Sequence record: OR496884.1
Reading direction: 5' to 3' (one strand)
Length of the DNA stretch: 64,000 nt
The notes under the pieces are model-generated. The model was not told where the DNA came from. It saw only the letters and a list, made by a program, of their open reading frames with translations, and searched no databases. This document shows, in pieces, positions 3,592 through 63,998 of this stretch. A program made the translations under genes and the position numbers. Within the stretch, counting starts at the first letter, position 1. Every line of letters starts with the position of its first letter.

Positions 3592-3609
3592 ATAATATCT
3601 ATTTGAAAA
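3592..3609 (-). promoter_or_regulatory. putative phage early promoter motif
   Basis: TTTTCAAATAGATATTAT on minus strand; near-copies at 9745, 13236, 16564, 23739, 48017, 49222, 50315, mostly intergenic and upstream of minus-strand genes. Confidence 0.6.
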
Positions 3610-3666: not shown

Positions 3667-5313
3667 CTAGATATTAGATTTGAAAACTTTTTCCATCACT
3701 TTATTACGATATTCTTCCCCGCCGTAATAAAAATCAAAACTGGAAAAGTTACGGGACCGCTCTGTTGCAAAATGTTTAGACCTTATAATGTCAACTTGAG
3801 TTTTCAATATTGGTGACCCAAGAAGGTCATGTACAAACTTACAGGTTATCATCATTTCCAACTCATTGTCTTTATAATGACGAGAAATGCCAAGAAAGTC
3901 TGGGTTGGTGTTAAGCGCCAACGTTTCTTTGTAAAGATAATCTAGAAAAACTCCAATTTGTTTTCTTTTCTGATCAAGGATCTGGCTATTGAACTGCCCG
4001 CTACCCTGTTGATACAACGCGATCTGGAATTTCAGGATAGCGATGCATTCTTTTTCATCCATATCTTCCAGAGTTACGCCAATAGCTTCTTTGGCAGCAG
4101 GTATTCCTCCCAGTTGTTTAATGATGTATCGGGTATTGTACTTGTTTTTGGTATGGATATTTGGGAGTGTTAAACGCTCCTTGACCTTATCATAAGAAAT
4201 CTGACCGCTTTGGATCTGATTCAAAACCGTGGCAAAAGACTTCTCTGCTTTTGCTTGTAGTTCTACAAGCCGATCATCAAAAATCTTGATGATCCCCTGT
4301 AATGTTTTCCCCCAGTTGTCGTTATTCATCAATTTAATATTGATTACTTGGTGACTGTCCTTTAATTGATAATCAAGGGGTTTAGTTTTCAATACCTCTT
4401 GAGTCTGGGTACCAGGAAAACAGTTCTGAACCAACCATTGCTTGAATGGTCTAAGTACACTAGGATTTAAATCATCCGGATCAATGCTAATAAATTGTGG
4501 TAAATCAAGAACGCATTTCTTAATTCCTTGGATTTTACGAATAATAGTAATAATATCACCAATGAACTGTTTTAATGGTATTTCGGAAATAGGTTTTCCT
4601 AGCCATTGTTCTTCAATGGTAATCTCGCGAGACATAAATTTAGCAAACAGTTGTTTTGCTGTAAAATAATCTTCAAGAATCTCCAATGCAGTTACTACGT
4701 CACTTTCGTGATCATCAGAGAGTTCCTTTCTTACAAAAGTAATAAAAGAATTAAACACTAAATCTTTATCATTTTTAAGAGACTCTTTCTCTTGTTTACG
4801 CCCTAATAATTTTTCAGTTACATCTAAATTTTTGTTTTTAAGATAGACACCAAAATCAAGAACCATATTGGAATCTAGTTGTTGACTTCCAAAGGTAATA
4901 TTAAATTGTTTTATGGGATCTAAGTTATTAAAACGATCATCTTTAGTTTTAATAACGTCCATCTTAGTGTCGCTAAAGTTTGGATTATTAACTTTAGCAA
5001 CAGCAGGTTTAAAAAACAGGCTATTTGCAATGCATTCGGTCATCTTTTTCCAAGCTTTATCATACCCCATCCCAAAAACAATTTCACGATGAGCAAGATA
5101 TAGTTTTTGATGATCAGATCCACCGTTAAGAATTTTGTCAACTATTCCTTGGGTGAAAATTCCTTGTTCAACTAAAAACACTACCGGAACTGAAACAATA
5201 TCACAAAGAAAAGAAAACTCCTGATCTGAGATTTTAAATGATGATCTGAGATTTGGAAGAATTTCTTTATTTGTGACCAAAGATTTTGGTTGAACAAAGT
5301 TTAGTTTACACAT
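3667..5313 (-). CDS. hypothetical protein, 548 aa
   Basis: Long ORF, helix-rich composition, no catalytic motif recognised. Confidence 0.85.
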   Translation of the reverse strand: MCKLNFVQPKSLVTNKEILPNLRSSFKISDQEFSFLCDIVSVPVVFLVEQGIFTQGIVDKILNGGSDHQKLYLAHREIVFGMGYDKAWKKMTECIANSLFFKPAVAKVNNPNFSDTKMDVIKTKDDRFNNLDPIKQFNITFGSQQLDSNMVLDFGVYLKNKNLDVTEKLLGRKQEKESLKNDKDLVFNSFITFVRKELSDDHESDVVTALEILEDYFTAKQLFAKFMSREITIEEQWLGKPISEIPLKQFIGDIITIIRKIQGIKKCVLDLPQFISIDPDDLNPSVLRPFKQWLVQNCFPGTQTQEVLKTKPLDYQLKDSHQVINIKLMNNDNWGKTLQGIIKIFDDRLVELQAKAEKSFATVLNQIQSGQISYDKVKERLTLPNIHTKNKYNTRYIIKQLGGIPAAKEAIGVTLEDMDEKECIAILKFQIALYQQGSGQFNSQILDQKRKQIGVFLDYLYKETLALNTNPDFLGISRHYKDNELEMMITCKFVHDLLGSPILKTQVDIIRSKHFATERSRNFSSFDFYYGGEEYRNKVMEKVFKSNI

Positions 5314-5328
5314 GTTATTTTCCCTAAA

Positions 5329-5637
5329 TTAGTTTGTGTTGTACAAACTTTCTAAATGATTATTTAACCCGCTAACATCACTTAGCTTAAATATAGCCGG
5401 TGGTGTTGTTTCAATAATGATATTTGTTTGTTCAACATTAATATCAAATTTTTGTTTGTTGTGGATCAAGTGTCCAGAAATCCTACCGGTTGAATCTTTG
5501 TTGATATGGATTTCTTCTAAATTACGATGAAACTTTGCGGTGATGCCTTTTAACGGACGTGACTTAATAACTTGTTCGTTGTTAACAAAACTAACAAAGC
5601 TTTTAACAAAACGATAAAGTGGATGATTAGGTCTCAT
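5329..5637 (-). CDS. hypothetical protein
   Basis: 102-aa ORF, GAGG SD. Confidence 0.75.
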   Translation of the reverse strand: MRPNHPLYRFVKSFVSFVNNEQVIKSRPLKGITAKFHRNLEEIHINKDSTGRISGHLIHNKQKFDINVEQTNIIIETTPPAIFKLSDVSGLNNHLESLYNTN

Positions 5638-6785: not shown

Positions 6786-7271
6786 TTAAACATTAAAAAC
6801 TTTACATTGCAACTCAGGAAGAATTTCTCCTGTGTTAAATAAATAACGGATTCCTTTTAAACATTTTTCAATGTCAATTAAAGTTGTCGGAATTTCTTTT
6901 ACCGCATGAACAGATTGTTTTTCATTATATTCATTTAAAACATAAGAAACAAAATGTTCATCATTGATGAATCGCGTCGCAACTTCGTGATCAAACAAAT
7001 AACCACAAAGTTCTGATTTTAAAAGTGCTATCCGATAAAAACTTTTCAATCCATACAAATATTCTACTGAATAATTAACAACATGTTTTTGTTCTTTGTT
7101 TGAAGAAACAAAAGAACAAATATAACCGTCAACGTTTGAAACAAGTTCTATGAAAACGTTTTCATTGACAGGAATAAAACATATCCCTGTTTTGTGATTT
7201 AAGAACTGATTTAATTCGCTTGCTGATTTGGATAAAGCGTTCACGATTTCTTTAACAGATACTGTTTTCAT
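6786..7271 (-). CDS. hypothetical protein
   Basis: 161-aa ORF, AAGGA SD. Confidence 0.8.
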   Translation of the reverse strand: MKTVSVKEIVNALSKSASELNQFLNHKTGICFIPVNENVFIELVSNVDGYICSFVSSNKEQKHVVNYSVEYLYGLKSFYRIALLKSELCGYLFDHEVATRFINDEHFVSYVLNEYNEKQSVHAVKEIPTTLIDIEKCLKGIRYLFNTGEILPELQCKVFNV

Positions 7272-9744: not shown

Positions 9745-9761
9745 ATAATATCTGTTTAAAA
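9745..9761 (-). promoter_or_regulatory. putative phage early promoter motif
   Basis: TTTTAAACAGATATTAT, copy of the motif at 3592. Confidence 0.6.
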
Positions 9762-13235: not shown

Positions 13236-13250
13236 ATGATATCTGTTTAA
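13236..13250 (-). promoter_or_regulatory. putative phage early promoter motif
   Basis: TTAAACAGATATCAT, variant of the recurring motif. Confidence 0.5.
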
Positions 13251-16519: not shown

Positions 16520-16563
16520 AATCGTTATCCTTTTAATAAATTATTACCAAGTTATTCAAAGTA

Positions 16564-16578
16564 ATAATATCTATTTGT
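16564..16578 (-). promoter_or_regulatory. putative phage early promoter motif
   Basis: ACAAATAGATATTAT, matches the recurring motif core. Confidence 0.55.
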
Positions 16579-16805
16579 TTATTTTTAGATATTCAATTTC
16601 TAACTAAACAAACAAAACCCTTTCCCTACCCAGAGATCTCTCTCCAGATAGGTTTAATTGAATTTTCTTTTCTAATTTACTTTTTCTTTCAAACTTCTCA
16701 AATGAACTCGTATATGGAATAAAGGAAGTTATTCACTTCGTTCATAAGCTATCCTTATCCATATACTCATTTTCTATAATTTACTAATATAGGGTTTCAC
16801 CCGGC

Positions 16806-16870
16806 ATTGACTTGGACTTAGGTAATTGGACCCGCTCTTGACTGACGGACCCCACTTGACTGATGACCCC
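16806..16870. repeat. short direct repeats (iteron-like) in a long intergenic region
   Basis: CTTGACTGACGGACCCC (16837-16853) and CTTGACTGATGACCCC (16855-16870), plus degenerate ATTGACTTGGAC (16806) and ATTGGACCCG (16825). Confidence 0.6.
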
Positions 16871-17024
16871 CTCTTTCTCCCCCTTCTACACTATTTTGGT
16901 AGCGTAAAAATAAGGAAAGAAAGTAAAGAAAAACATCAGAAAAGTAGAATTCATCAATCAAGAAAAGAAACCAATTACATATAATATATATTCACACTAA
17001 AAAATAAACAAAAATAAACAAAAA

Positions 17025-17051
17025 AATAAGTGAGAGTTTCTCTCACTTATT
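17025..17051 (-). terminator. intrinsic terminator
   Basis: Perfect stem AATAAGTGAGAG/CTCTCACTTATT with long T tail on minus strand. Confidence 0.85.
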
Positions 17052-17058
17052 TAATTGA

Positions 17059-17451
17059 TTAAAATGGAAGACGATTGTCGTTGACAAAAACATTTTCTGT
17101 CATTTTACGAATGTCGTCTTCACTACCAAGATCGTCCCTAATGATTTTGAAAAATCCTAGGAAAGGATAAATCAATAACTCACTAATAGGTTTCCTTTTA
17201 TTGCAATTAAATAAAATACTTTTATAATGAGATTCTGGTGTTATCCAGAAAATAAAGTCTGTGTCAGGTTTTATTACACTGAAATGGAACTCTGGAAATT
17301 CTTCAATAAACTTGATTTGTTCCAAAGTAACAATTGGTTCGCCAAACTTTAATGGTGATTTTGAAACATAAACCCCTCCATTAATTTTTACGCAAAAGAA
17401 TTGATCAATCAAATCTTGAAGACTAACAAATTTACGGATACTTTCTTTCAT
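17059..17451 (-). CDS. hypothetical protein
   Basis: 130-aa ORF, GAAGGA SD; N-terminus resembles ORF 13998..14549. Confidence 0.8.
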   Translation of the reverse strand: MKESIRKFVSLQDLIDQFFCVKINGGVYVSKSPLKFGEPIVTLEQIKFIEEFPEFHFSVIKPDTDFIFWITPESHYKSILFNCNKRKPISELLIYPFLGFFKIIRDDLGSEDDIRKMTENVFVNDNRLPF

Positions 17452-17503
17452 AAGTCCTTCCTGATAAATTAAAAATACAAATGGGGGTGTTGTATTTTTG
17501 TAT

Positions 17504-18001
17504 CTACAGTGTTAAAACTATTGACGTATTTTGAAAAAGATTTAACGAATAATAATCATTGGTGATTTCGGTCATAGGTCCTTTGCACCAAGGTTTCCAA
17601 TCATTGGTTTTTATTTCAAAAACGTTATCTCTTTTTGCAAACGCTCTCAGCCGTTCATACGTTTCTTTGGTAAACTTATGATCTGGTTGGAAAATGTCAT
17701 CAATTCCATGAACGGTCAATACTTTTTGAAACATGTATTGTTGAACAAGGTTAGCGACAGCAGACATCCCATGGTAATGAAACTGTTCCAAATCAAGTTT
17801 ACCCAAAAGACTCTCTTTACGTGTTGGCGTATCGACAAGACTAACTTCAAAAGTTTCTTTACTTATCCGTTTGACATTAACTGAAAACATTTCAGTTAAC
17901 TTATAAAACATAGAAAACCCGATTTTTGTTTCAATTACGGGGAGTGAAATCAGTTGTTTAAAAACACTTAATGGGGTGACCGTGGACATATCTAACTCCA
18001 T
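17504..18001 (-). CDS. hypothetical protein
   Basis: 165-aa ORF. Confidence 0.78.
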   Translation of the reverse strand: MELDMSTVTPLSVFKQLISLPVIETKIGFSMFYKLTEMFSVNVKRISKETFEVSLVDTPTRKESLLGKLDLEQFHYHGMSAVANLVQQYMFQKVLTVHGIDDIFQPDHKFTKETYERLRAFAKRDNVFEIKTNDWKPWCKGPMTEITNDYYSLNLFQNTSIVLTL

Positions 18002-23069: not shown

Positions 23070-23801
23070 TTATTTAAAAATATCTTCCAGTGTACAACGT
23101 TCCCCCATTTCACCATCAACTTCATTAGCCAACATACCGTTAATTACCCGGCCTTTGTAAGATTTAAATTTATCAGATCGTTCATGGTCTTTCTTAACCA
23201 AAAGTTCAAACACCCCGGCATAGTTTCCGGTTGAACGATTAGTTTCGGTAACATAATAACCGTGAATAATATCGTAAACGATACCGCGTTTTACACGGTT
23301 GTATTCAATCATGTCCTTGACCATGTCTTCCAATAGCTTAGACATCCGCTGGTTGGAGTATTGATCAATAAACGCACCCATGACCGCTCCATGTTCTTCA
23401 AAGTCTTCAGTCAACGTGTAGCGAAAATCAGTGTGATTAAAATCATTAATCAATTTACTGATCATTCCTGATTTTGGACGAGTGAATTTAGTCTCACCAC
23501 GAGACGTTAGATAAAACATGATGAATCGCTGTTTGTTATTTAAAAAGAAACTAACAGCTTTAATATTATTGGTAGGAAAGTTTTCCAGCTTCCAATGAGG
23601 TATGTGATTAACATCGATGGAAAGTTCCTTCACCTCAATGTTGGAAAACAGGTGACCCAATGCATAACAGATTCGACTTTTAATTGTTTCAAAATCCATG
23701 ACATTATCCTTAGATATTAATATTGGTTTTACAATTTGATAATATCTATTTATAAATTTATGGAAATAGACTATTGTATGTAACAAAAAGCATTTTCTCA
23801 A
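23070..23801 (-). CDS. hypothetical protein (true start likely MDFETIK near 23700)
   Basis: A promoter-like motif at 23739-23756 and an AAGGA SD lie inside the 5' part of the called ORF. Confidence 0.75.
   Translation of the reverse strand: MRKCFLLHTIVYFHKFINRYYQIVKPILISKDNVMDFETIKSRICYALGHLFSNIEVKELSIDVNHIPHWKLENFPTNNIKAVSFFLNNKQRFIMFYLTSRGETKFTRPKSGMISKLINDFNHTDFRYTLTEDFEEHGAVMGAFIDQYSNQRMSKLLEDMVKDMIEYNRVKRGIVYDIIHGYYVTETNRSTGNYAGVFELLVKKDHERSDKFKSYKGRVINGMLANEVDGEMGERCTLEDIFK
23739..23756 (-). promoter_or_regulatory. putative phage early promoter motif
   Basis: TTTATAAATAGATATTAT. Confidence 0.55.
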
Positions 23802-23864
23802 TAATTATTTCAATAAGTCATTATTGAGAATTGTGCTTTCCGCTAAGCATGTTTCATAAGTAGG

Positions 23865-23892
23865 TTGCAATACTTTACATCTCTAGTAATAT
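23865..23892 (+). promoter_or_regulatory. possible promoter for the ncRNA/tRNA locus
   Basis: TTGCAA-N16-TAATAT sigma70-like pair just before the first hairpin; could be chance in AT-rich DNA. Confidence 0.3.
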
Positions 23893-23895
23893 ATT

Positions 23896-24575
23896 GTGAG
23901 GACCCCTCCTAGTCCTCACTTTCATAATAGATATTTAAAATAAGTGTTTATTATGAAAGTCTACCTTCGCCAGACACTTGACTTTCAATCTCATTGTTTT
24001 ATCCCTTTCATAATAAAAGTGTGCATCCTTTCGCTACCGATGTGCACTTCTTAATGTATTCTTTGTCAGAGTTCATTAAGAAGCGTAACCTGTTGCGATT
24101 CATTGTCAAATCCTTATGCATGTACTAAGCTGAGGGAGAGGCTCGACTCCCTCATCTTCTTAATAAGTATTTTAATGAGTATTTATTAAGAAGGTCTTAC
24201 ATTGCGGTGATGCCTTCTTTGCATTCTTTTTCATTTCTTAGCCATTTTCAATTTTTCTGTATAAGCCAAATAGTATTTCTGTTTGGCTCTTTTTAATATC
24301 TATTTATTAAAGTGTATATTAAAAAGATAATTTAGGAGTCTTTGTGTTTTTCTTTGATTTAACAATAGGCTAGGACATGGCTGTTAAATCTTTCCTTTTG
24401 GCATAAAGACTCCGCTTCATTTGATCTAACTCACTTATACCACCTAAAGAGTTTACGAACCATATATTGGTCGACAGCTTAACTAAAGGTTAAAGATGTA
24501 GTTAAATCATTTTCTCCAGATTGTAAAGATCTGGATTTATTAAAAACATACTGTAAAAATATATAGTATGTAACA
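23896..24575 (+). ncRNA. putative structured ncRNA segment A (hairpin array)
   Basis: At least ten stems of 7-19 bp in succession; G-U pairs are valid only on the plus strand; no ORF over 61 aa. Confidence 0.6.
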
Positions 24576-24579
24576 AAAT

Positions 24580-24663
24580 GCGGGTATGGTGAAATCGGTA
24601 GACACAAGGGACTTAAAATCCCTCGCTTATGGCGTGCCAGTTCGATTCTGGCTATCCGCACCA
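24580..24663 (+). tRNA. tRNA-Leu (anticodon TAA)
   Basis: Acceptor GCGGGTA/TATCCGC, anticodon arm AGGGA-CTTAAAA-TCCCT, long variable arm, GTTCGATT T-loop, encoded CCA. Confidence 0.96.
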
Positions 24664-24674
24664 CTTTCGAATCC

Positions 24675-24950
24675 CCGAGACGGTTATCAGTAAGTCTATA
24701 AACGACTTGGTGCGGCTGATATACCGTTCTCGGCCCTATTAGAGTTAATCAGGTTCTTAACTTAAACAAACTGATGTTTGACTTAGGCGAAGAGGGCAAC
24801 TTGATTAGCTCAAACACATTTGGATCTATCTCACGAAATTGTCAAACTGACGTTTACAAGCAAGTCACTCCGACTCGAATTGGAACAGTTAATTGTAAAC
24901 AATTTATACGGGACTCAATAGTTCACCGTGACGACAAAGAGTGGATCCAA
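24675..24950 (+). ncRNA. putative structured ncRNA segment B (between tRNA-Leu and tRNA-Asn)
   Basis: Nested stems: 24675-24733 (16 bp, 2 bulges), 24742-24753/24800-24811, 24820-24826/24943-24949, 24852-24859/24893-24900. Confidence 0.55.
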
Positions 24951-24960
24951 TGTTATCTCT

Positions 24961-25036
24961 GGTTCCTTAGTTCAGTAGGTAGAACACCGGACTGTTAATC
25001 CGTATGTCACTGGTTCGATCCCAGTAGGAACCGCCA
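24961..25036 (+). tRNA. tRNA-Asn (anticodon GTT)
   Basis: 76 nt cloverleaf, GGTTCCT/AGGAACC acceptor, CTGTTAA anticodon loop, encoded CCA. Confidence 0.96.
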
Positions 25037-25041
25037 TATTT

Positions 25042-25118
25042 GAGGATGTAGTTCAGATGGTTAGAATACCAGCCTGTCACGTTGGTGGTCGCGGGTTCGA
25101 GTCCCGTCATCCTCGCCA
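25042..25118 (+). tRNA. tRNA-Asp (anticodon GTC)
   Basis: 77 nt cloverleaf, GAGGATG/CATCCTC acceptor, CTGTCAC anticodon loop, encoded CCA. Confidence 0.96.
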
Positions 25119-25120
25119 TA

Positions 25121-25266
25121 TTTCATTCCAGATTTATCTGGTTCATACATCGGTACCGTAAGGTATAACCAAATGCACCTAAGTTCATAACTGAATACGG
25201 TGACGGTTTACATGAAACGTTCTGAACGGAAACTAAGACGAACGACGTGTGTATGATAATATGAAA
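25121..25266 (+). ncRNA. putative structured ncRNA segment C
   Basis: Closing stems TTTCAT/ATGAAA and TCATACA/TGTATGA enclose ACCGTA/TACGGT and small hairpins. Confidence 0.45.
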
Positions 25267-25276
25267 GCGTATTAAT

Positions 25277-25354
25277 GAGAACTATAGACGTATGGAAAGT
25301 CGCCTAATATCACTTATAATTAGGATTGTCTTGGTTCGAATCCAAAAGTTCTCA
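25277..25354 (+). pseudogene. tRNA-like element with a 10-nt anticodon loop and no CCA
   Basis: Acceptor GAGAACT/AGTTCTC, GAC/GTC D-stem with GG in the loop, CTAAT-ATCACTTATA-ATTAG arm, TTGG-TTCGAAT-CCAA T-arm. Confidence 0.6.
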
Positions 25355-25360
25355 TCCCTC

Positions 25361-25785
25361 TTCCTTCTATCTGTGCATTCATCAGCCTCCGTTGTTTGCT
25401 CCTCCATTGTCATCGTCGTCAATACAGGTAGAAGGAAACTTATTTCGTTGTACCGTATCGCCCAAGCAGGTGGTTTAATACAACGAATAATCTTGCTTTC
25501 GAGCAAGATAAATTGAGTAACCGTGCTTAATGATAACGGCATCGTCTATGATGACTATCAAGATTGTTTTATAGATGTTGTAGGTTGCTGCCAGTGCCAA
25601 GAAGGTCTGGGGCATTAACGAGTACAAAAAGAAGCTCGACTACGGACTAAACACTTTAAGACATGAACACGGTAAGCCAAAGCTAGTCACTTTGGAAGTT
25701 GTTCAGCAATGTTCAGCCTATTATCCCTTTCAGGATCCTTTACCAAAGGCCACGGTGGGGTTACCTAAAAGAGATAATGGGAAGA
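25361..25785 (+). ncRNA. putative structured ncRNA segment D
   Basis: 14-bp stem around a C-rich loop, further hairpins including a TTCG-capped 8-bp stem, long-range pairings and a possible pseudoknot; ends before a terminator. Confidence 0.55.
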
Positions 25786-25806
25786 ATATTTATTTATATA
25801 ACAATA

Positions 25807-25845
25807 CCTACCTAATCCTAAACAGGATTAGGTAGGGTTTTTGTT
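25807..25845 (+). terminator. intrinsic terminator closing the tRNA/ncRNA locus
   Basis: CCTACCTAATCCT/AGGATTAGGTAGG followed by GTTTTTGTTTGTTT. Confidence 0.85.
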
Positions 25846-25889
25846 TGTTTAACGATATTTTGAACTAACCGAATTAAAAGGTCTTTATT

Positions 25890-26738
25890 ATGAATCTTAT
25901 TGATTTTTGTGTAGATCATGTTGTTAATGGTCCAAGTGACATCAGCGATTATTTATTAAAATTAGCATTTGATAATCCAAACAACTTAGGTGGGTTTGTT
26001 TGGGGAGATCAAAATACTGAATACAGTATTGAACAAGGCATTAGAGAAAAAGTCATTGTTAAGATGATAGCGCCTCTGTTAAATGTCCAAGGTGGACAAA
26101 CAGAAATTATTGATTTAAGTGGTGCACATATTAAAAATATGGCCGGTGGTAATATTCACGTAAACGTTCCCGACTTCTTAACAGGTGGAAGAAAAATACT
26201 TACCGTTCTGGAGGTTTATCCAGGTAGTTTAAACCGCGCTATAACGTCCAATGGTAACTTCACGGCATATAACTCATGCGAGAGTGCCGGTCAAATGGGA
26301 AATGCGTTAAATCGTGTTATGAACGGTTTAGACTCAGGTCAAGTACAACGTGTGTATACTCATTTTACCATGGTTGGGAATAATAGTTTTATTATTCGCT
26401 CTGCTGGCTCAGTGATGTTTAATTTAGTAGCAAAAGTTGTTTTGTCTTACGATGAACATTTTAGCGTAGTCCCACCGAAGATGTATTATGCTTTTGCAAA
26501 ATTAGTAGAACTGGGTGTTAAAAGTTATATTTATAAAAACTGCAGACGTGGTATGCAAGAAGCTGTTTCTCGTTTTGGTGTTTCTATAGATGACATTAGA
26601 GATGAGGTAATGGAATACCGAGACGCATCTAAAGATTTCAGAGATTATTTTGAAGAAGACATTCAAAAATACTTGGCTTATTCTGATGCTAAAGGTGTCT
26701 CGGATACTATTCGTCAAATTATGCCTCGTAGAAGATAA
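25890..26738 (+). CDS. conserved phiKZ-like protein, probable virion component
   Basis: 282-aa ORF; pattern SIEQGIREKVI...LNVQGG recalled from phiKZ-like core proteins (unverified). Confidence 0.65.
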   Translation: MNLIDFCVDHVVNGPSDISDYLLKLAFDNPNNLGGFVWGDQNTEYSIEQGIREKVIVKMIAPLLNVQGGQTEIIDLSGAHIKNMAGGNIHVNVPDFLTGGRKILTVLEVYPGSLNRAITSNGNFTAYNSCESAGQMGNALNRVMNGLDSGQVQRVYTHFTMVGNNSFIIRSAGSVMFNLVAKVVLSYDEHFSVVPPKMYYAFAKLVELGVKSYIYKNCRRGMQEAVSRFGVSIDDIRDEVMEYRDASKDFRDYFEEDIQKYLAYSDAKGVSDTIRQIMPRRR

Positions 26739-31440: not shown

Positions 31441-31472
31441 GACCCCTCCCCAGCCAAAGCCGGAGAGGAGTC
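31441..31472 (-). terminator. intrinsic terminator after terminase
   Basis: 14-bp stem GACTCCTCTCCGGC/GCTGGGGAGGGGTC; G-U wobbles valid on the minus strand. Confidence 0.7.
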
Positions 31473-61147: not shown

Positions 61148-61175
61148 TGCTGATGATTCCTATAGAGAGGATGTA

Positions 61176-63998
61176 ATGGCTAAAAACGATTTTGATATGG
61201 ATTGGGACGATCCTTTTGGAGGTGAATTTGACCTCGATATGGATTTCGACATGGACCCATATGCAAAGAAAGGATTTTTGGGTGGAGTAACTTCAGGATT
61301 TTTATCAGGGGTTGTCGATGAGACTGTAGGATCTGGTCCTGCACGCATGCGTACATTAAGAACAATATTACCAAGTTCTTTTAGCAACGCCCTTGACCGT
61401 GTTAGTTACGCCGCCACTAAATATGAAGAACTGAAAACAGACTTTAAAGAACAAAATTATGAGTCAGTTAAATCGCTACAAAGCATTGCCCGAAGCATTG
61501 GCGAGAAGGCTCGTAACAAAGGTTTTGGTAAAACCGCTGATCAATTAGACAACTTTTCAGAGAAAGATTTTTCTAGTTGGGAAAAGTACGATTACAATTC
61601 TGGTCCTACTGTTCCAACCATGGAACAAACAGATGAGTACGATGTTTCCCGTTCTATAGAAGAATCCATGGACAGTCAAGAAGGAGTAATGTTCCGTCTT
61701 GGTGATTCATTAAATGAAATGTCGGCAACTGTTGGTGGGATGTTAAACGGAGCTATTGGAGCCGGTAACCGCCAACTTGTTTCAATTGATTCAGGTGTAA
61801 AACAATTAATTGATTTTCAGCGTAGCATCCAATTTAAAATGGATCAAGCTAAAGTCAACTTAATGGCAAAAAGTTATGTTGCGGATATCAAGTTTTATAA
61901 GTTCATGGAAAAAGGTATTCATACCGAAATAAGTGAACTAAAGAAAATTGTTATAAATAGCAACAAATCTGATTACGAAAAAACATCTCATTTAACTGCT
62001 TCTAAAGCATTTATGCGTAATCGACTGTTTAACACAGTCGGTAATCGTGTTGGAGGTCTCTCAGGGCTTCTTAGAGATCGTTTTGGAGCAGATGCTAGAA
62101 AAGGTACCTATGGAGATATAGAAGGGATCTTAGGTAGCTTTGCGGAAGTATTAGAGATGTCCGACGATATGCCAATTTCAAAAGGTATGTTGGGGAGTAT
62201 GGCTGGCAAGCACCTCGCTGGAGCTCTCATTAATAATGCACCGTATTATTTTGAACGAGGGGGTGGTAAAGAGTGGATTGACAAACTTGCCGAGAAAAAC
62301 CCAGAACAAGCAGAAGCATTTAAGGAACGTTATAGTCAAGTAACTAATGCCGGTAATAAAATTTCTTATATGGCTAACAATGCAACCGGGTTGTTTAATT
62401 ACATGGCTGAAGATTGGCAACCAATAGACGAGATGAAGTATCTTGACTATGAAGATTACTTAGATAATCTACCTGCTGATAAGAAACCAACACCAAGAGC
62501 ATTGTGGGAAATTCAAAACGCAGTTGGTAACCGAGCCAAGGCCGGTATTAACAACGTGATGGCTGAAATGACTAAGGCCAAAGGAACACAATACACTCTT
62601 GCAAGGCGTAATGTAAAAGATCTCAATCAACCAGGTATCTGGAAAGAGATGAACAACATTACACTTAATGAAGTGCTTCCTGGGTTATTAGGTCGAATCC
62701 ATCAAAGCGTGGAAGGTATCAGAACAGGCGAGATGGGAGAAGCCATTTCTTACTCTTACATGCGTGGGCAATACATGGAAGAAGGTGATCGCAAAACTGC
62801 TGTCGCTGCTGACTTGATGCCTTATTCTGATTTTTCACGTTATACTTCCGCTGCATTAGAATTTGTAGATTCAGTTGATCCTGATAAATTACTTTCAGCT
62901 AATGCAAGAAAAGCATTTGCGCTTCAAATAGCTAAAGACGTAGATAAGGAAAAAGGATTTAACCCTTTCTATTATCTTGGTGATATCCCAGGGATCACTG
63001 GTAGTGTTCAAAACGAAATACATACTGTTATCAAACGTCACTTTGATATTGATGATGACGGTGTGGAAGCCTTTAAACAGACAACTGGACTTGACCGTGT
63101 TAATTTCATGTCAACCATGAAAACTGACATTGCTCAAGAAAGATTAAATCAGGCTGGTGCAAGTGCACAAAACTTAAAGGAAATCTTTCCGAATGTAGCA
63201 GAACGGATTGACCTGTTAAGATCAACCGGGAATGAACAGTTACTCCGAGACATTGGTGTTATCTACACTGAAAACGGTGTTGACAAAGTGAACATGGACG
63301 TCTTCCATAATCGCTTTGCGCAATTTATGGATAACCCCAACGACCCTGCTTTAAGAGGGATGGGTAAAAACCAAACCTTTAAACAAAAAGGAAAGGATTT
63401 TACTGGAACTCCATTTACACCAAAACCTAACCCATATACCGAAGTTGAAAATAACAGTTCGGTTGGTATAACTGGTGAGTTAAACACTACCATGGCTAAG
63501 TTAATTGATACCATTAATAAAATGGATAAATCAATTACAACACCTAATGTTTCTGAACTTCCCAACTTGTCGGAATATGTAACACCATTAAGTAACCATT
63601 TAGATACAATTTCTTCCAATACTGGAAAGATGGAAAGCTTAATGGTAGAACTTCTTGATATTGTCAAAGCAGGTAAATTGTTTAGTCGTAAACAATCTGC
63701 AACTGAAGAGAAACAAGAAGAAAGTGCAAAATCTGGTTTCATGAATAAAATGAAGCAATTCTTGCCTACCAATATTTTTGGCAAAGGTTTGGATTTGGTT
63801 ATGAAAAACCAGCCAATTGTTTTGGGTTCAGTCCTTGGGGCAGTTGGAGCTAATTTTATTAATAACCCTATTTTAGCTGCTGGTGCTATTGCTGGAGGTG
63901 CTTTATTAGGTGCGGTAGTACAACGTTGGGAAAAACAAGATCGTCAAGCTACTGGTGATCAACCTTCTGATGATGAAGACATTTTAAATGAGAAAGGA
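61176..63998 (+). CDS. large tail protein (phiKZ gp181-like, tape-measure/lytic), 5' part only
   Basis: GAGG SD, ATG at 61176, acidic N-terminus MAKNDFDMDWDDPF; frame appears open to the window end; divergent from beta' as in phiKZ. Confidence 0.8.
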   Translation, partial: MAKNDFDMDWDDPFGGEFDLDMDFDMDPYAKKGFLGGVTSGFLSGVVDETVGSGPARMRTLRTILPSSFSNALDRVSYAATKYEELKTDFKEQNYESVKSLQSIARSIGEKARNKGFGKTADQLDNFSEKDFSSWEKYDYNSGPTVPTMEQTDEYDVSRSIEESMDSQEGVMFRLGDSLNEMSATVGGMLNGAIGAGNRQLVSIDSGVKQLIDFQRSIQFKMDQAKVNLMAKSYVADIKFYKFMEKGIHTEISELKKIVINSNKSDYEKTSHLTASKAFMRNRLFNTVGNRVGGLSGLLRDRFGADARKGTYGDIEGILGSFAEVLEMSDDMPISKGMLGSMAGKHLAGALINNAPYYFERGGGKEWIDKLAEKNPEQAEAFKERYSQVTNAGNKISYMANNATGLFNYMAEDWQPIDEMKYLDYEDYLDNLPADKKPTPRALWEIQNAVGNRAKAGINNVMAEMTKAKGTQYTLARRNVKDLNQPGIWKEMNNITLNEVLPGLLGRIHQSVEGIRTGEMGEAISYSYMRGQYMEEGDRKTAVAADLMPYSDFSRYTSAALEFVDSVDPDKLLSANARKAFALQIAKDVDKEKGFNPFYYLGDIPGITGSVQNEIHTVIKRHFDIDDDGVEAFKQTTGLDRVNFMSTMKTDIAQERLNQAGASAQNLKEIFPNVAERIDLLRSTGNEQLLRDIGVIYTENGVDKVNMDVFHNRFAQFMDNPNDPALRGMGKNQTFKQKGKDFTGTPFTPKPNPYTEVENNSSVGITGELNTTMAKLIDTINKMDKSITTPNVSELPNLSEYVTPLSNHLDTISSNTGKMESLMVELLDIVKAGKLFSRKQSATEEKQEESAKSGFMNKMKQFLPTNIFGKGLDLVMKNQPIVLGSVLGAVGANFINNPILAAGAIAGGALLGAVVQRWEKQDRQATGDQPSDDEDILNEKG

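Follow-up and report, generated by a model that had tools for sequence, protein, structure and literature searches.

A conserved cluster of putative structured RNA elements around the tRNA genes of Aeromonas phage AerS_266 and related jumbo phages

GOLLD and ROOL are single RNAs of ~600–800 nucleotides (nt) associated with phages and tRNA genes, and the 3′ external transcribed spacer of the Escherichia coli glyW-cysT-leuZ operon acts as a sponge for small RNAs (sRNAs). Phage T4 carries two stable RNAs of unknown function, RNAC (species 1) and RNAD (species 2), in its tRNA region (PMC9697503). The phages phiKZ and 201phi2-1 make abundant short RNAs by premature termination, one of them directly upstream of a tRNA (PMC10914365, PMC11512511), and tRNA genes have dedicated phage promoters in phiKZ-like phages (PMC10914365, PMC11512511, PMC8244752). 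The locus described here lies in a 64,000-nt stretch of DNA (the window) that matches Aeromonas phage AerS_266 (genus Chaoshanvirus; OR496884.1, 243.7 kb) at 100% identity; this is a phiKZ-like, nucleus-forming jumbo phage, and window coordinates equal record coordinates minus 124000. The record annotates only three tRNAs in the gap 23700–25889, which holds a conserved cluster of separate structured RNA elements, previously undescribed, and not one giant RNA.

The cluster comprises (i) a leader with a tandem hairpin array, (ii) three tRNAs with the structured elements S1–S3 and T1 beside them, (iii) a tRNA-like RNA, and (iv) a trailer (T2–T5) that is closed by a terminator. It shares with GOLLD and ROOL a structured, non-coding, phage- and tRNA-associated character; in contrast to these, it is a mosaic of ~60–190 nt elements separated by tRNAs and has no Rfam match. 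The spacer RNAs of E. coli tRNA operons, functional by-products of tRNA processing, offer a parallel to a proposed release of S3 and T1, although the latter two are larger, multi-branched, and structurally conserved across phage genera. As with T4 RNAC and RNAD, small non-coding RNAs lie among phage tRNA genes on the same strand, but the phage family and the RNA polymerases differ, and the island has more elements as well as a tandem array. The phages phiKZ and 201phi2-1 share with AerS_266 two phage-encoded RNA polymerases, a phage nucleus, and structured leaders and terminators ahead of genes. Their short RNAs were defined by transcriptomics, whereas the AerS_266 elements were defined by comparative sequence only, and the consulted passages of those papers (PMC10914365, PMC11512511, PMC8244752) mention no tandem hairpin array. 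The elements are best described as new RNA motifs of a known general kind, namely phage non-coding RNAs tied to tRNA clusters. No mention of them was found in the consulted passages of the genome papers and jumbo-phage transcriptome papers searched.

Constraint, strand polarity and relatives of the gap

The gap separates a leftward gene that ends at 23699 from a rightward gene for a 282-amino acid (aa) virion protein that begins at 25890. Within Chaoshanvirus, represented by the three genomes of AerS_266, ZPAH34, and CF8, it is alignable throughout with ZPAH34 (87.6% identity) and over about half of its length with CF8 (73.7% identity), in which the neighboring protein is 74.5% identical. The first-pass annotation of this DNA had seen no credible protein gene here, and the comparison bears this out for all of 23700–25889: no open reading frame (ORF) of 30 aa or longer is conserved in the three genomes. 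Between AerS_266 and ZPAH34, substitutions in the gap lack 3-periodicity (e.g., 11/10/8 by codon phase), as opposed to 92/25/42 and 18/6/109 in the flanking coding sequences (CDSs); the rightward one has 109 of its 133 substitutions in a single codon phase, and its most variable phase reaches ~39 per 100. Indels in the gap measure 1, 2, 5, and 8 nt and are frame-breaking. Substitutions amount to 6.6–20.6 per 100 nt versus 25.2 and 15.7 in the flanking genes, with the leader modules at 6.6, T1 at 7.0, the tRNA-like RNA at 10.3, S1–S3 at 13.5, and T5 at 13.9, while 25355–25640 is the least constrained part (20.6). The low substitution density, the missing periodicity, and the indels together mark the gap as non-coding DNA that is yet under purifying selection. 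A second ORF-free gap at 61148–63262 is only apparent, a product of crude gene calling, and lies inside a tail-fiber gene that runs off the window.

The gap is also structured on the plus strand, on which nearly its whole length forms hairpins preserved by compensatory changes. All seven stems that had been singled out as examples are present, and six of them show compensatory or wobble changes among relatives (23918–23960, 24156–24193, 24264–24288, 24335–24413, 24742–24811, and 25361–25437, the outer stem of the last being invariant). The seventh, 24017–24049, is unchanged within the genus; AhC3_1 has a hairpin of another sequence at that place. Compensatory changes among homologs, checked in relatives, occur in the leader, S1–S3, T1, and T5. 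The proposal of a stem density above that of shuffled controls stands for part of the locus: sliding 120-nt folds compared to shuffles give plus-strand z-scores of −2.0 to −5.2 over 23740–24399 (mean ~−3.3, versus ~−0.7 in downstream CDSs), but values near 0 over 24760–25359, so that the structure of S3 and T1 in this latter region is visible only in alignments. The asserted polarity of wobble pairs is borne out as well. The consensus fold of the leader reaches −213.6 kcal/mol on the plus strand and −165.9 kcal/mol on the minus strand, and the ratio of G·U to A·C cells is 73:5 versus 32:15 when both strands are treated alike. T1 and S3 have the same plus-strand preference, and the terminase-side hairpin near 31441 has the opposite polarity, with its wobble pairs on the minus strand.

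A syntenic locus exists in phages whose 282-aa protein is 61–67% identical (AhC3_1, OBP, N1M2, Yubaba, PS1, AVP1, pAEv1810, D6, SXP01, and Survivor). All share the same layout of leftward genes, a ~1 kb ORF-poor leader, a tRNA cluster, a ~1 kb trailer, and the virion gene. In six of these phages, the plus-strand folds of leaders and trailers are stabler than shuffles (mean z −1.4 to −3.5, versus −0.6 to −1.0 for CDS controls), and the minus strand is always less stable than the plus strand. HNH endonuclease genes lie in the locus in PS1 and pAEv1810. Beyond these isolates, scans of IMG/VR and metagenome contigs with an exact pattern of an ultra-conserved leader block gave no match, and protein-anchored scans of the same contigs gave no relatives; a T1 pattern scan of IMG/VR and the genome collection was equally negative, and blastn searches started from the T1 sequences of SXP01 and D6 added no relatives. 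A loose repeat-hairpin pattern yielded 13 single matches in IMG/VR (22–29 bits), none in arrays, which were read as chance palindromes. With the collection scans negative, the comparative evidence comes from GenBank phage isolates throughout.

The leader array and the elements around the tRNAs

The array spans 23795–24327 and consists of 4–5 tandem modules at a regular spacing of 95–145 nt. Each module joins a GC hairpin of variable sequence (7–10 base pairs, bp) to a conserved 17-bp AU-rich hairpin with arms CUUCUUAAU...AUUAAGAAG. The two helices abut with zero linker; an RNase III processing site comprises about two turns of double-stranded RNA. Across all modules and phages, the consensus of the AU-rich hairpin is yCTTCTTAAT-nnn-TATTT-(loop)-AGTGT-nnn-ATTAAGAAGr. 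RNAalifold folds the three Chaoshanvirus leaders with 224 pairs, 25 of them compensatory and nearly all in local hairpins.

A covariance model of the bipartite module, R2, recovers four complete copies and a partial one in the 64 kb, all in the leader. Another 173 kb of the AerS_266 genome contain no copy, and the array is unique in ~237 kb. The partial AU-rich repeat hairpin H0 (23795–23830, plus strand, as are all elements below unless stated) scores 25.3 bits and covaries. M1 (23894–23959; 61.1 bits) is made up of a GC hairpin at 23897–23919 with three compensatory pairs and an AU-rich hairpin at 23920–23959 with one. M2 (24019–24084; 61.7 bits) stands at the start of the ultra-conserved block 24017–24110, which is ~94% identical in CF8 despite the 74.5% identity of the neighboring protein; AhC3_1 retains the hairpins of M2 with the sequence of the first replaced. 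M3 (24130–24194; 63.2 bits) has four compensatory pairs, and M4 (24263–24327; 55.8 bits) also has compensatory pairs and a terminator-like first hairpin. The leader then continues with H9, an extended 79-nt hairpin (24335–24413) with ~7 compensatory pairs among the three phages, and is closed by H10 (24515–24535), a weak, partly conserved terminator-like hairpin found by a terminator scan. A small protein was considered for the block 24017–24110, which has ORFs on both strands, and was rejected. All five AerS_266/CF8 substitutions in the overlapping ORFs fall in the AU-rich hairpin of M2 (24050–24082), and the constraint does not act on a protein because all five change the amino acid in both frames.

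R2 copies are found in tandem (1–6 of them) at the same leader site in all 12 other phages examined from the OBP-like clade, which is defined by a 282-aa virion protein at least ~61% identical. The array always has the orientation of the tRNAs and co-occurs with them: no copies were found in EL, Miami, and VP4B, which have no tRNA cluster at that place, nor in 45 kb of phiKZ or in a T4-type tRNA locus. In a model-fitted alignment of 21 R2 copies, 95.2% of cells are paired, 11 of 17 pairs are compensatory (e.g., CTTCCTAAT/ATTAGGAAG and CTTTTTAAT/ATTAAAAAG), and 0 of 500 shuffles match the repeat hairpin for three of five measures. U·G wobbles are kept at two fixed positions, in 14 and 15 of the 21 copies. 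A CRISPR array or solitary CRISPR repeat units were also considered. The mean column identity of ten aligned modules is ~62%, and the intervening sequences are conserved between phages; the array is not CRISPR-like because its repeats are diverged and its spacers conserved, and the Rfam scan gave no CRISPR-related match.

ARAGORN and Rfam agree on tRNA-Leu(UAA) at 24580–24663, tRNA-Asn(GUU) at 24961–25036, and tRNA-Asp(GUC) at 25042–25118. tRNA-Asp is absent from ZPAH34, in which an 82-nt difference (window 25032–25113 versus ~4330–4340 of the ZPAH34 locus sequence) is bounded by CGCCAT (CGCCATATTT in AerS_266). Both tRNA-Asn and tRNA-Asp terminate in this hexamer, a sign that tRNA-Asp was gained or lost by recombination between tRNA 3′ ends. 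At the tRNA-Asn position, CF8 has a tRNA with a CAU anticodon (5362–5439 of its locus sequence), annotated as Ile2 and called Met by ARAGORN; its flanks are conserved, so that it looks like a cassette-like tRNA replacement.

Three elements lie between tRNA-Leu and tRNA-Asn. S1 (24675–24733) is a three-tier hairpin of 21 pairs, five of them compensatory among the three phages, and S2 (24740–24815) is a hairpin whose stem GAGTTAATCAGGTT/AACTTGATTAGCTC is compensatorily changed in ZPAH34 and CF8; together they have 11 compensatory pairs and are both genus-restricted. S3 (24820–24950) is a multi-stem RNA of ~130 nt that ends 10 nt before tRNA-Asn and is shared by Chaoshanvirus and Ferozepurvirus. 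Of its 38 pairs, 10 are compensatory, and its outer stem is TTGGATC../..GATCCAA in AerS_266 and TAGATCTTTCTC/GAGAAAGATCTA in AVP1. In Ferozepurvirus, S3 directly follows tRNA-Met (AVP1) and precedes a tRNA-like sequence that lacks annotation, beyond which lies tRNA-Leu. This tRNA-like sequence, at ~6886–6960 of the AVP1 and ~2865–2937 of the pAEv1810 locus sequence, has an acceptor stem AAGGATT/AATCCTT, a T arm TTGGTTCGAATCCAA, and a possible CAU anticodon; ARAGORN makes no call.

T1 (25119–25276) is a multi-branch RNA of ~158 nt that sits flush between tRNA-Asp and the tRNA-like gene. Its four distinct sequences come from three lineages and support 44 pairs with 98.3% of cells paired and 12 compensatory pairs. 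None of 500 shuffles reaches the T1 values, and controls with slid partners are 26–38% paired. T1 is present in AerS_266, ZPAH34, the D6 group (between tRNA-Asp and tRNA-Trp), and the Shewanella phage SXP01 (directly after tRNA-Cys), and it is absent from CF8; its covariance model, R1, scores 161–182 bits solely in T1-bearing phages. Homology to T4 RNAC was considered on the basis of a shared GACGG..AACGTTC and rejected. With filters off, R1 has no match at a T4-type rnaC, and its best score in that locus is 8.2 bits, away from rnaC. A segment with tRNA-Asn, tRNA-Asp, T1, and tRNA-Trp identical to that of jumbo phage D6 is also found in MT713136.1 (Aeromonas phage AP1, classified as Straboviridae), next to fragments annotated as terminase and virion RNA polymerase, and this entry looks like a mixed or chimeric assembly.

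The tRNA-like RNA (25277–25354) occupies the place of tRNA-Trp in D6. It was rejected as a canonical tRNA: its anticodon loop has 10 nt (11 in ZPAH34) instead of 7, no CCA is encoded, and ARAGORN does not call it. Against the Rfam tRNA family, it scores 29.6 and 26.0 bits in two runs (gathering score 29). It is classed as tRNA-like because it has a 7-bp acceptor stem, a T arm (GGTTCGAATCC), and an anticodon stem with covariation between AerS_266 and ZPAH34. Further downstream, T2–T4 (25361–25640) form a run of hairpins with 77 predicted pairs, eight of them compensatory between two genomes, in the least conserved part of the gap. T5 (25677–25791) is a structured domain known from six phages of three lineages. 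It sits immediately ahead of the terminator and always adjoins the gene for the 282-aa virion protein, whatever tRNAs lie upstream. Its fold, including the terminator, has 45 pairs, of which 25 are compensatory. A phiKZ-type short RNA from a 5′ untranslated region (5′UTR) is an abundant transcript that runs from a start site to a terminator ahead of a gene; at T5, the structured domain, the terminator, and the downstream gene are present. T5 is not the published giant-phage sRNA upstream of the gp182 homolog because the gene differs and the gp182 homolog is elsewhere in AerS_266.

Promoter candidates and the predicted terminator

The motif AAATAGATATTAT has 22 matches with up to two mismatches (7.35 expected), mainly on the minus strand and ahead of leftward genes, one of which borders the gap. 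In its extended form, AAATAGATATTAT(C)nnnTTGTA, the nnnTTGTA part is often present. Sites on the minus strand include 3592–3604, 9745–9757, 13236–13248, 16564–16576, and 23739–23751, the last of which belongs to a phage-type promoter candidate of the leftward cluster (23725–23751, minus; AAATAGATATTATCAAATTGTAAAACC) in a region conserved across genera by nhmmer. The motif probably represents a promoter class of the genus for phage RNA polymerase. Within the leftward cluster, a 539-nt intergenic gap (16520–17058, minus) has a terminator tail GGGTTTTGTTTGTTT like that at 25836–25850, followed by a perfect AAATAGATATTAT motif. A one-mismatch copy lies at 24293–24305 (minus) inside hairpin H8 of M4 and points leftward; antisense transcription of part of the leader is conceivable.

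On the plus strand, the candidate promoter P1 (23764–23788; AAATAGAC-TATTGTATGTAACAAAA) is the likely start of the leader transcript, and the candidate P2 (24557–24578; AAATATATAGTATGTAACAAAA) ends 2 nt before tRNA-Leu, to which it may give a promoter of its own. The exact 13-mer GTATGTAACAAAA occurs in the window only at P1 and at 24566 and is conserved in ZPAH34 and CF8. TGTATGTAAC was rejected as a genome-wide promoter, since its remaining matches are intragenic and at chance frequency. The first-pass annotation had instead placed a possible promoter at 23865–23892. This sigma-70-like site (TTGCAA-16-TAATAT, plus) matches 8 of 12 positions and falls under the scan threshold, though it is conserved in the three Chaoshanvirus genomes. 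The phage encodes its own RNA polymerases (PMC10673249), and the site is of doubtful relevance for this reason. In Ferozepurvirus, the leader continues into the first tRNA with no GTATGTAA motif ahead of it, which suggests co-transcription of leader and tRNAs.

The intrinsic terminator proposed at the other end was confirmed in the sequence. A hairpin at 25807–25836 and a T-run are present, and the whole element (25807–25845) has a 13-bp stem with six GC pairs followed by GTTTTTGTTT. This predicted terminator has the GC-rich hairpin and T-run of the intrinsic type, and its stem covaries in six phages. Between it and the ribosome-binding site of the virion gene (25846–25889, and homologous positions in six phages), CGATnTTTTGwAC is conserved and may be a promoter of the structural operon.

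Competing explanations and biological meaning

The preferred reading, held to be likely though with considerable room for doubt, is that 23764–25845 is a plus-strand island of RNA genes that share transcripts with the tRNAs and are set free when the tRNAs are processed. The motif enrichment, the shared 13-mer, and the hint of co-transcription in Ferozepurvirus are the grounds for proposing rightward transcription of array and tRNA unit. Transcription would run from the phage-type promoters at ~23764–23788 and 24557–24578 to the terminator at 25807–25845, and the transcripts would contain, besides three tRNAs and one tRNA-like RNA, several structured RNAs that evolve independently. tRNA maturation (RNase P at 5′ ends and 3′ trimming) would necessarily excise S3 and T1 as ~130–190 nt RNAs because they lie 0–10 nt from tRNA genes. 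The leader array would form a single transcript with 4–5 copies of the bipartite module. Its conserved 17-bp AU-rich helix with two conserved U·G wobbles may be the repeated site at which a protein that binds double-stranded RNA, or a nuclease, recognizes or processes the transcript, and could present or release the variable GC hairpins and conserved spacers. T5 and the terminator would close the unit just ahead of the virion-gene operon.

Several points weigh against this reading. Promoters, RNA ends, and RNA stability are all deduced from sequence, the promoter motif was assigned on enrichment and position only, and P2 is genus-specific. Several GC hairpins, with U-rich tracts behind them, could end transcription within the array. 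Each element is represented by 2–6 distinct sequences, and kinship can inflate shuffle-based statistics. Strand polarity alone is no proof of RNA, since hairpins of single-stranded DNA likewise tolerate G·T pairs. Among the annotated proteins of the phage, three are RNA-related and conceivable partners of the island: a putative CRISPR-associated endoribonuclease (1375–1692, minus), a QueC queuosine-pathway protein (record 16627–17526), and a 575-aa ribonuclease (record 85471–87198). Both tRNA-Asn and tRNA-Asp belong to the queuosine tRNAs.

The first-pass annotation had favored one highly structured RNA unit of ~2 kb around the tRNAs; the corresponding explanation is a large ornate RNA in the manner of GOLLD or ROOL that includes the tRNAs and folds and acts as one. 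The non-coding, plus-strand, densely structured character of the tRNA-flanking locus and its lack of a known family stand, while the single unit does not. The idea draws on the ORF-free, continuously structured stretch between a possible promoter and a strong terminator, on the established proximity of GOLLD and ROOL to phage tRNAs, and on a few long-range leader helices proposed by RNAalifold. These predicted helices, however, are invariant or changed on one side only, none showing compensatory change. The elements are distributed independently: S3 is found in Chaoshanvirus and Ferozepurvirus, T1 is missing from CF8, and the array extends through the whole OBP-like clade. Whole tRNA genes have been gained or lost between elements among relatives, as with the tRNA-Asp missing from ZPAH34 and the different tRNA at the Asn position of CF8, and tRNA maturation would sever any common transcript. 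A cmscan of the whole window against the 4227 Rfam families returned only tRNA at gathering thresholds, and a permissive scan of 23700–25950 with E up to 5 found no GOLLD, ROOL, or other large RNA, nor anything but tRNA at half of any family's gathering score. A single acting unit is very improbable on this evidence, and the other option raised with it, a polycistron of small RNAs freed by tRNA processing, fits best. Less credible still is the view that the locus is a recombination hot spot in which former tRNA genes and small ORFs are decaying, with no function left. Its plasticity, with variable tRNA content and endonuclease genes in PS1 and pAEv1810, and its degenerate tRNA-like sequence speak for decay. 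But neutral decay is ruled out by a substitution density well under that of neighboring genes and far under the ~39 per 100 of the most variable phase of the rightward CDS, covariation is extensive, and elements are kept in different genera despite a flanking protein of just 61–67% identity.

Two further explanations are each unlikely but to be taken more seriously. In one, the leader array (23795–24327) acts as DNA, i.e., as a replication origin, a packaging-initiation region, or a set of single-stranded hairpin signals for priming or polymerase entry, and only the tRNA-flanking elements are RNAs. The array is unique in the genome, it consists of regularly spaced tandem AT-rich palindromes in a divergent intergenic region, the terminase gene is 5.6 kb off, and a promoter-like motif lies on the minus strand inside H8; the tolerance of G·T mismatches in single-stranded DNA hairpins would suit this role too. 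The cumulative GC skew has its minimum just downstream (~25000), but skew follows transcription direction as well and is therefore not specific evidence for an origin. Judged as an iteron-type origin, the array is unique and repeated, yet its repeats are hairpins with strand-specific wobble pairs. Against a DNA-level role, compensatory changes keep intrastrand pairing and not half-site sequence, the U·G wobbles do not drift to Watson–Crick pairs at their two fixed positions, the plus strand folds 48 kcal/mol better than the minus strand, and the array is co-oriented and co-occurs with tRNAs. In the other, leader and trailer are purely cis-regulatory: attenuators or put-like antitermination hairpins would tune transcription into the tRNAs, and T5 with the terminator would end transcription conditionally in the 5′ region of the virion operon, while none of the RNAs would have a role in trans. 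U-rich tracts after GC hairpins, the constant place of T5 beside the gene for the 282-aa protein, and two abutting hairpins of ~65 nt that recall HK022 put by architecture alone are in keeping with this. Many short 5′UTR RNAs arise by premature termination in phiKZ-type phages (PMC10914365). Attenuation alone, however, hardly explains 4–6 near-identical modules in series, and it is the AU hairpin that is conserved, not the terminator-like GC hairpin. The Chaoshanvirus tRNA-Leu apparently has its own promoter downstream of the array, and S3 and T1 lie between tRNAs with no regulated gene after them. A cis-regulatory role for parts of the locus is possible.

Beyond release by tRNA processing, the island of RNA genes invites a bolder and clearly speculative proposal, to which only a small chance is given. 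The array might be an early-expressed precursor whose conserved, wobble-bearing 17-bp helix is the repeated handle of a dedicated RNA-binding protein or nuclease, encoded by phage or host, with the GC hairpins and spacers as specificity parts, acting as a multi-site sponge for a host factor or as guide-like small RNAs, and S3 and T1 might be trans-acting RNAs delivered by the tRNA-processing machinery. If true, the locus would be an RNA-based takeover or counter-defense tool of nucleus-forming jumbo phages and a new class of phage RNA locus.

Nucleus-forming jumbo phages are much studied for defense evasion, while their non-coding RNAs are almost unknown, the published cases coming from the transcriptomes of two Pseudomonas phages. 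In every record examined, the locus is annotated as empty or with spurious small ORFs, an annotation that is corrected here. At least four candidate RNA motifs with covariation, none matched by Rfam, emerge from it (the array module, S3, T1, and T5), and motifs are conserved across phages of Aeromonas, Pseudomonas, Shewanella, Klebsiella, Serratia, and Pantoea. They provide testable targets for the long-standing question, familiar from T4 RNAC and RNAD, of why phages keep non-tRNA RNAs in their tRNA clusters.

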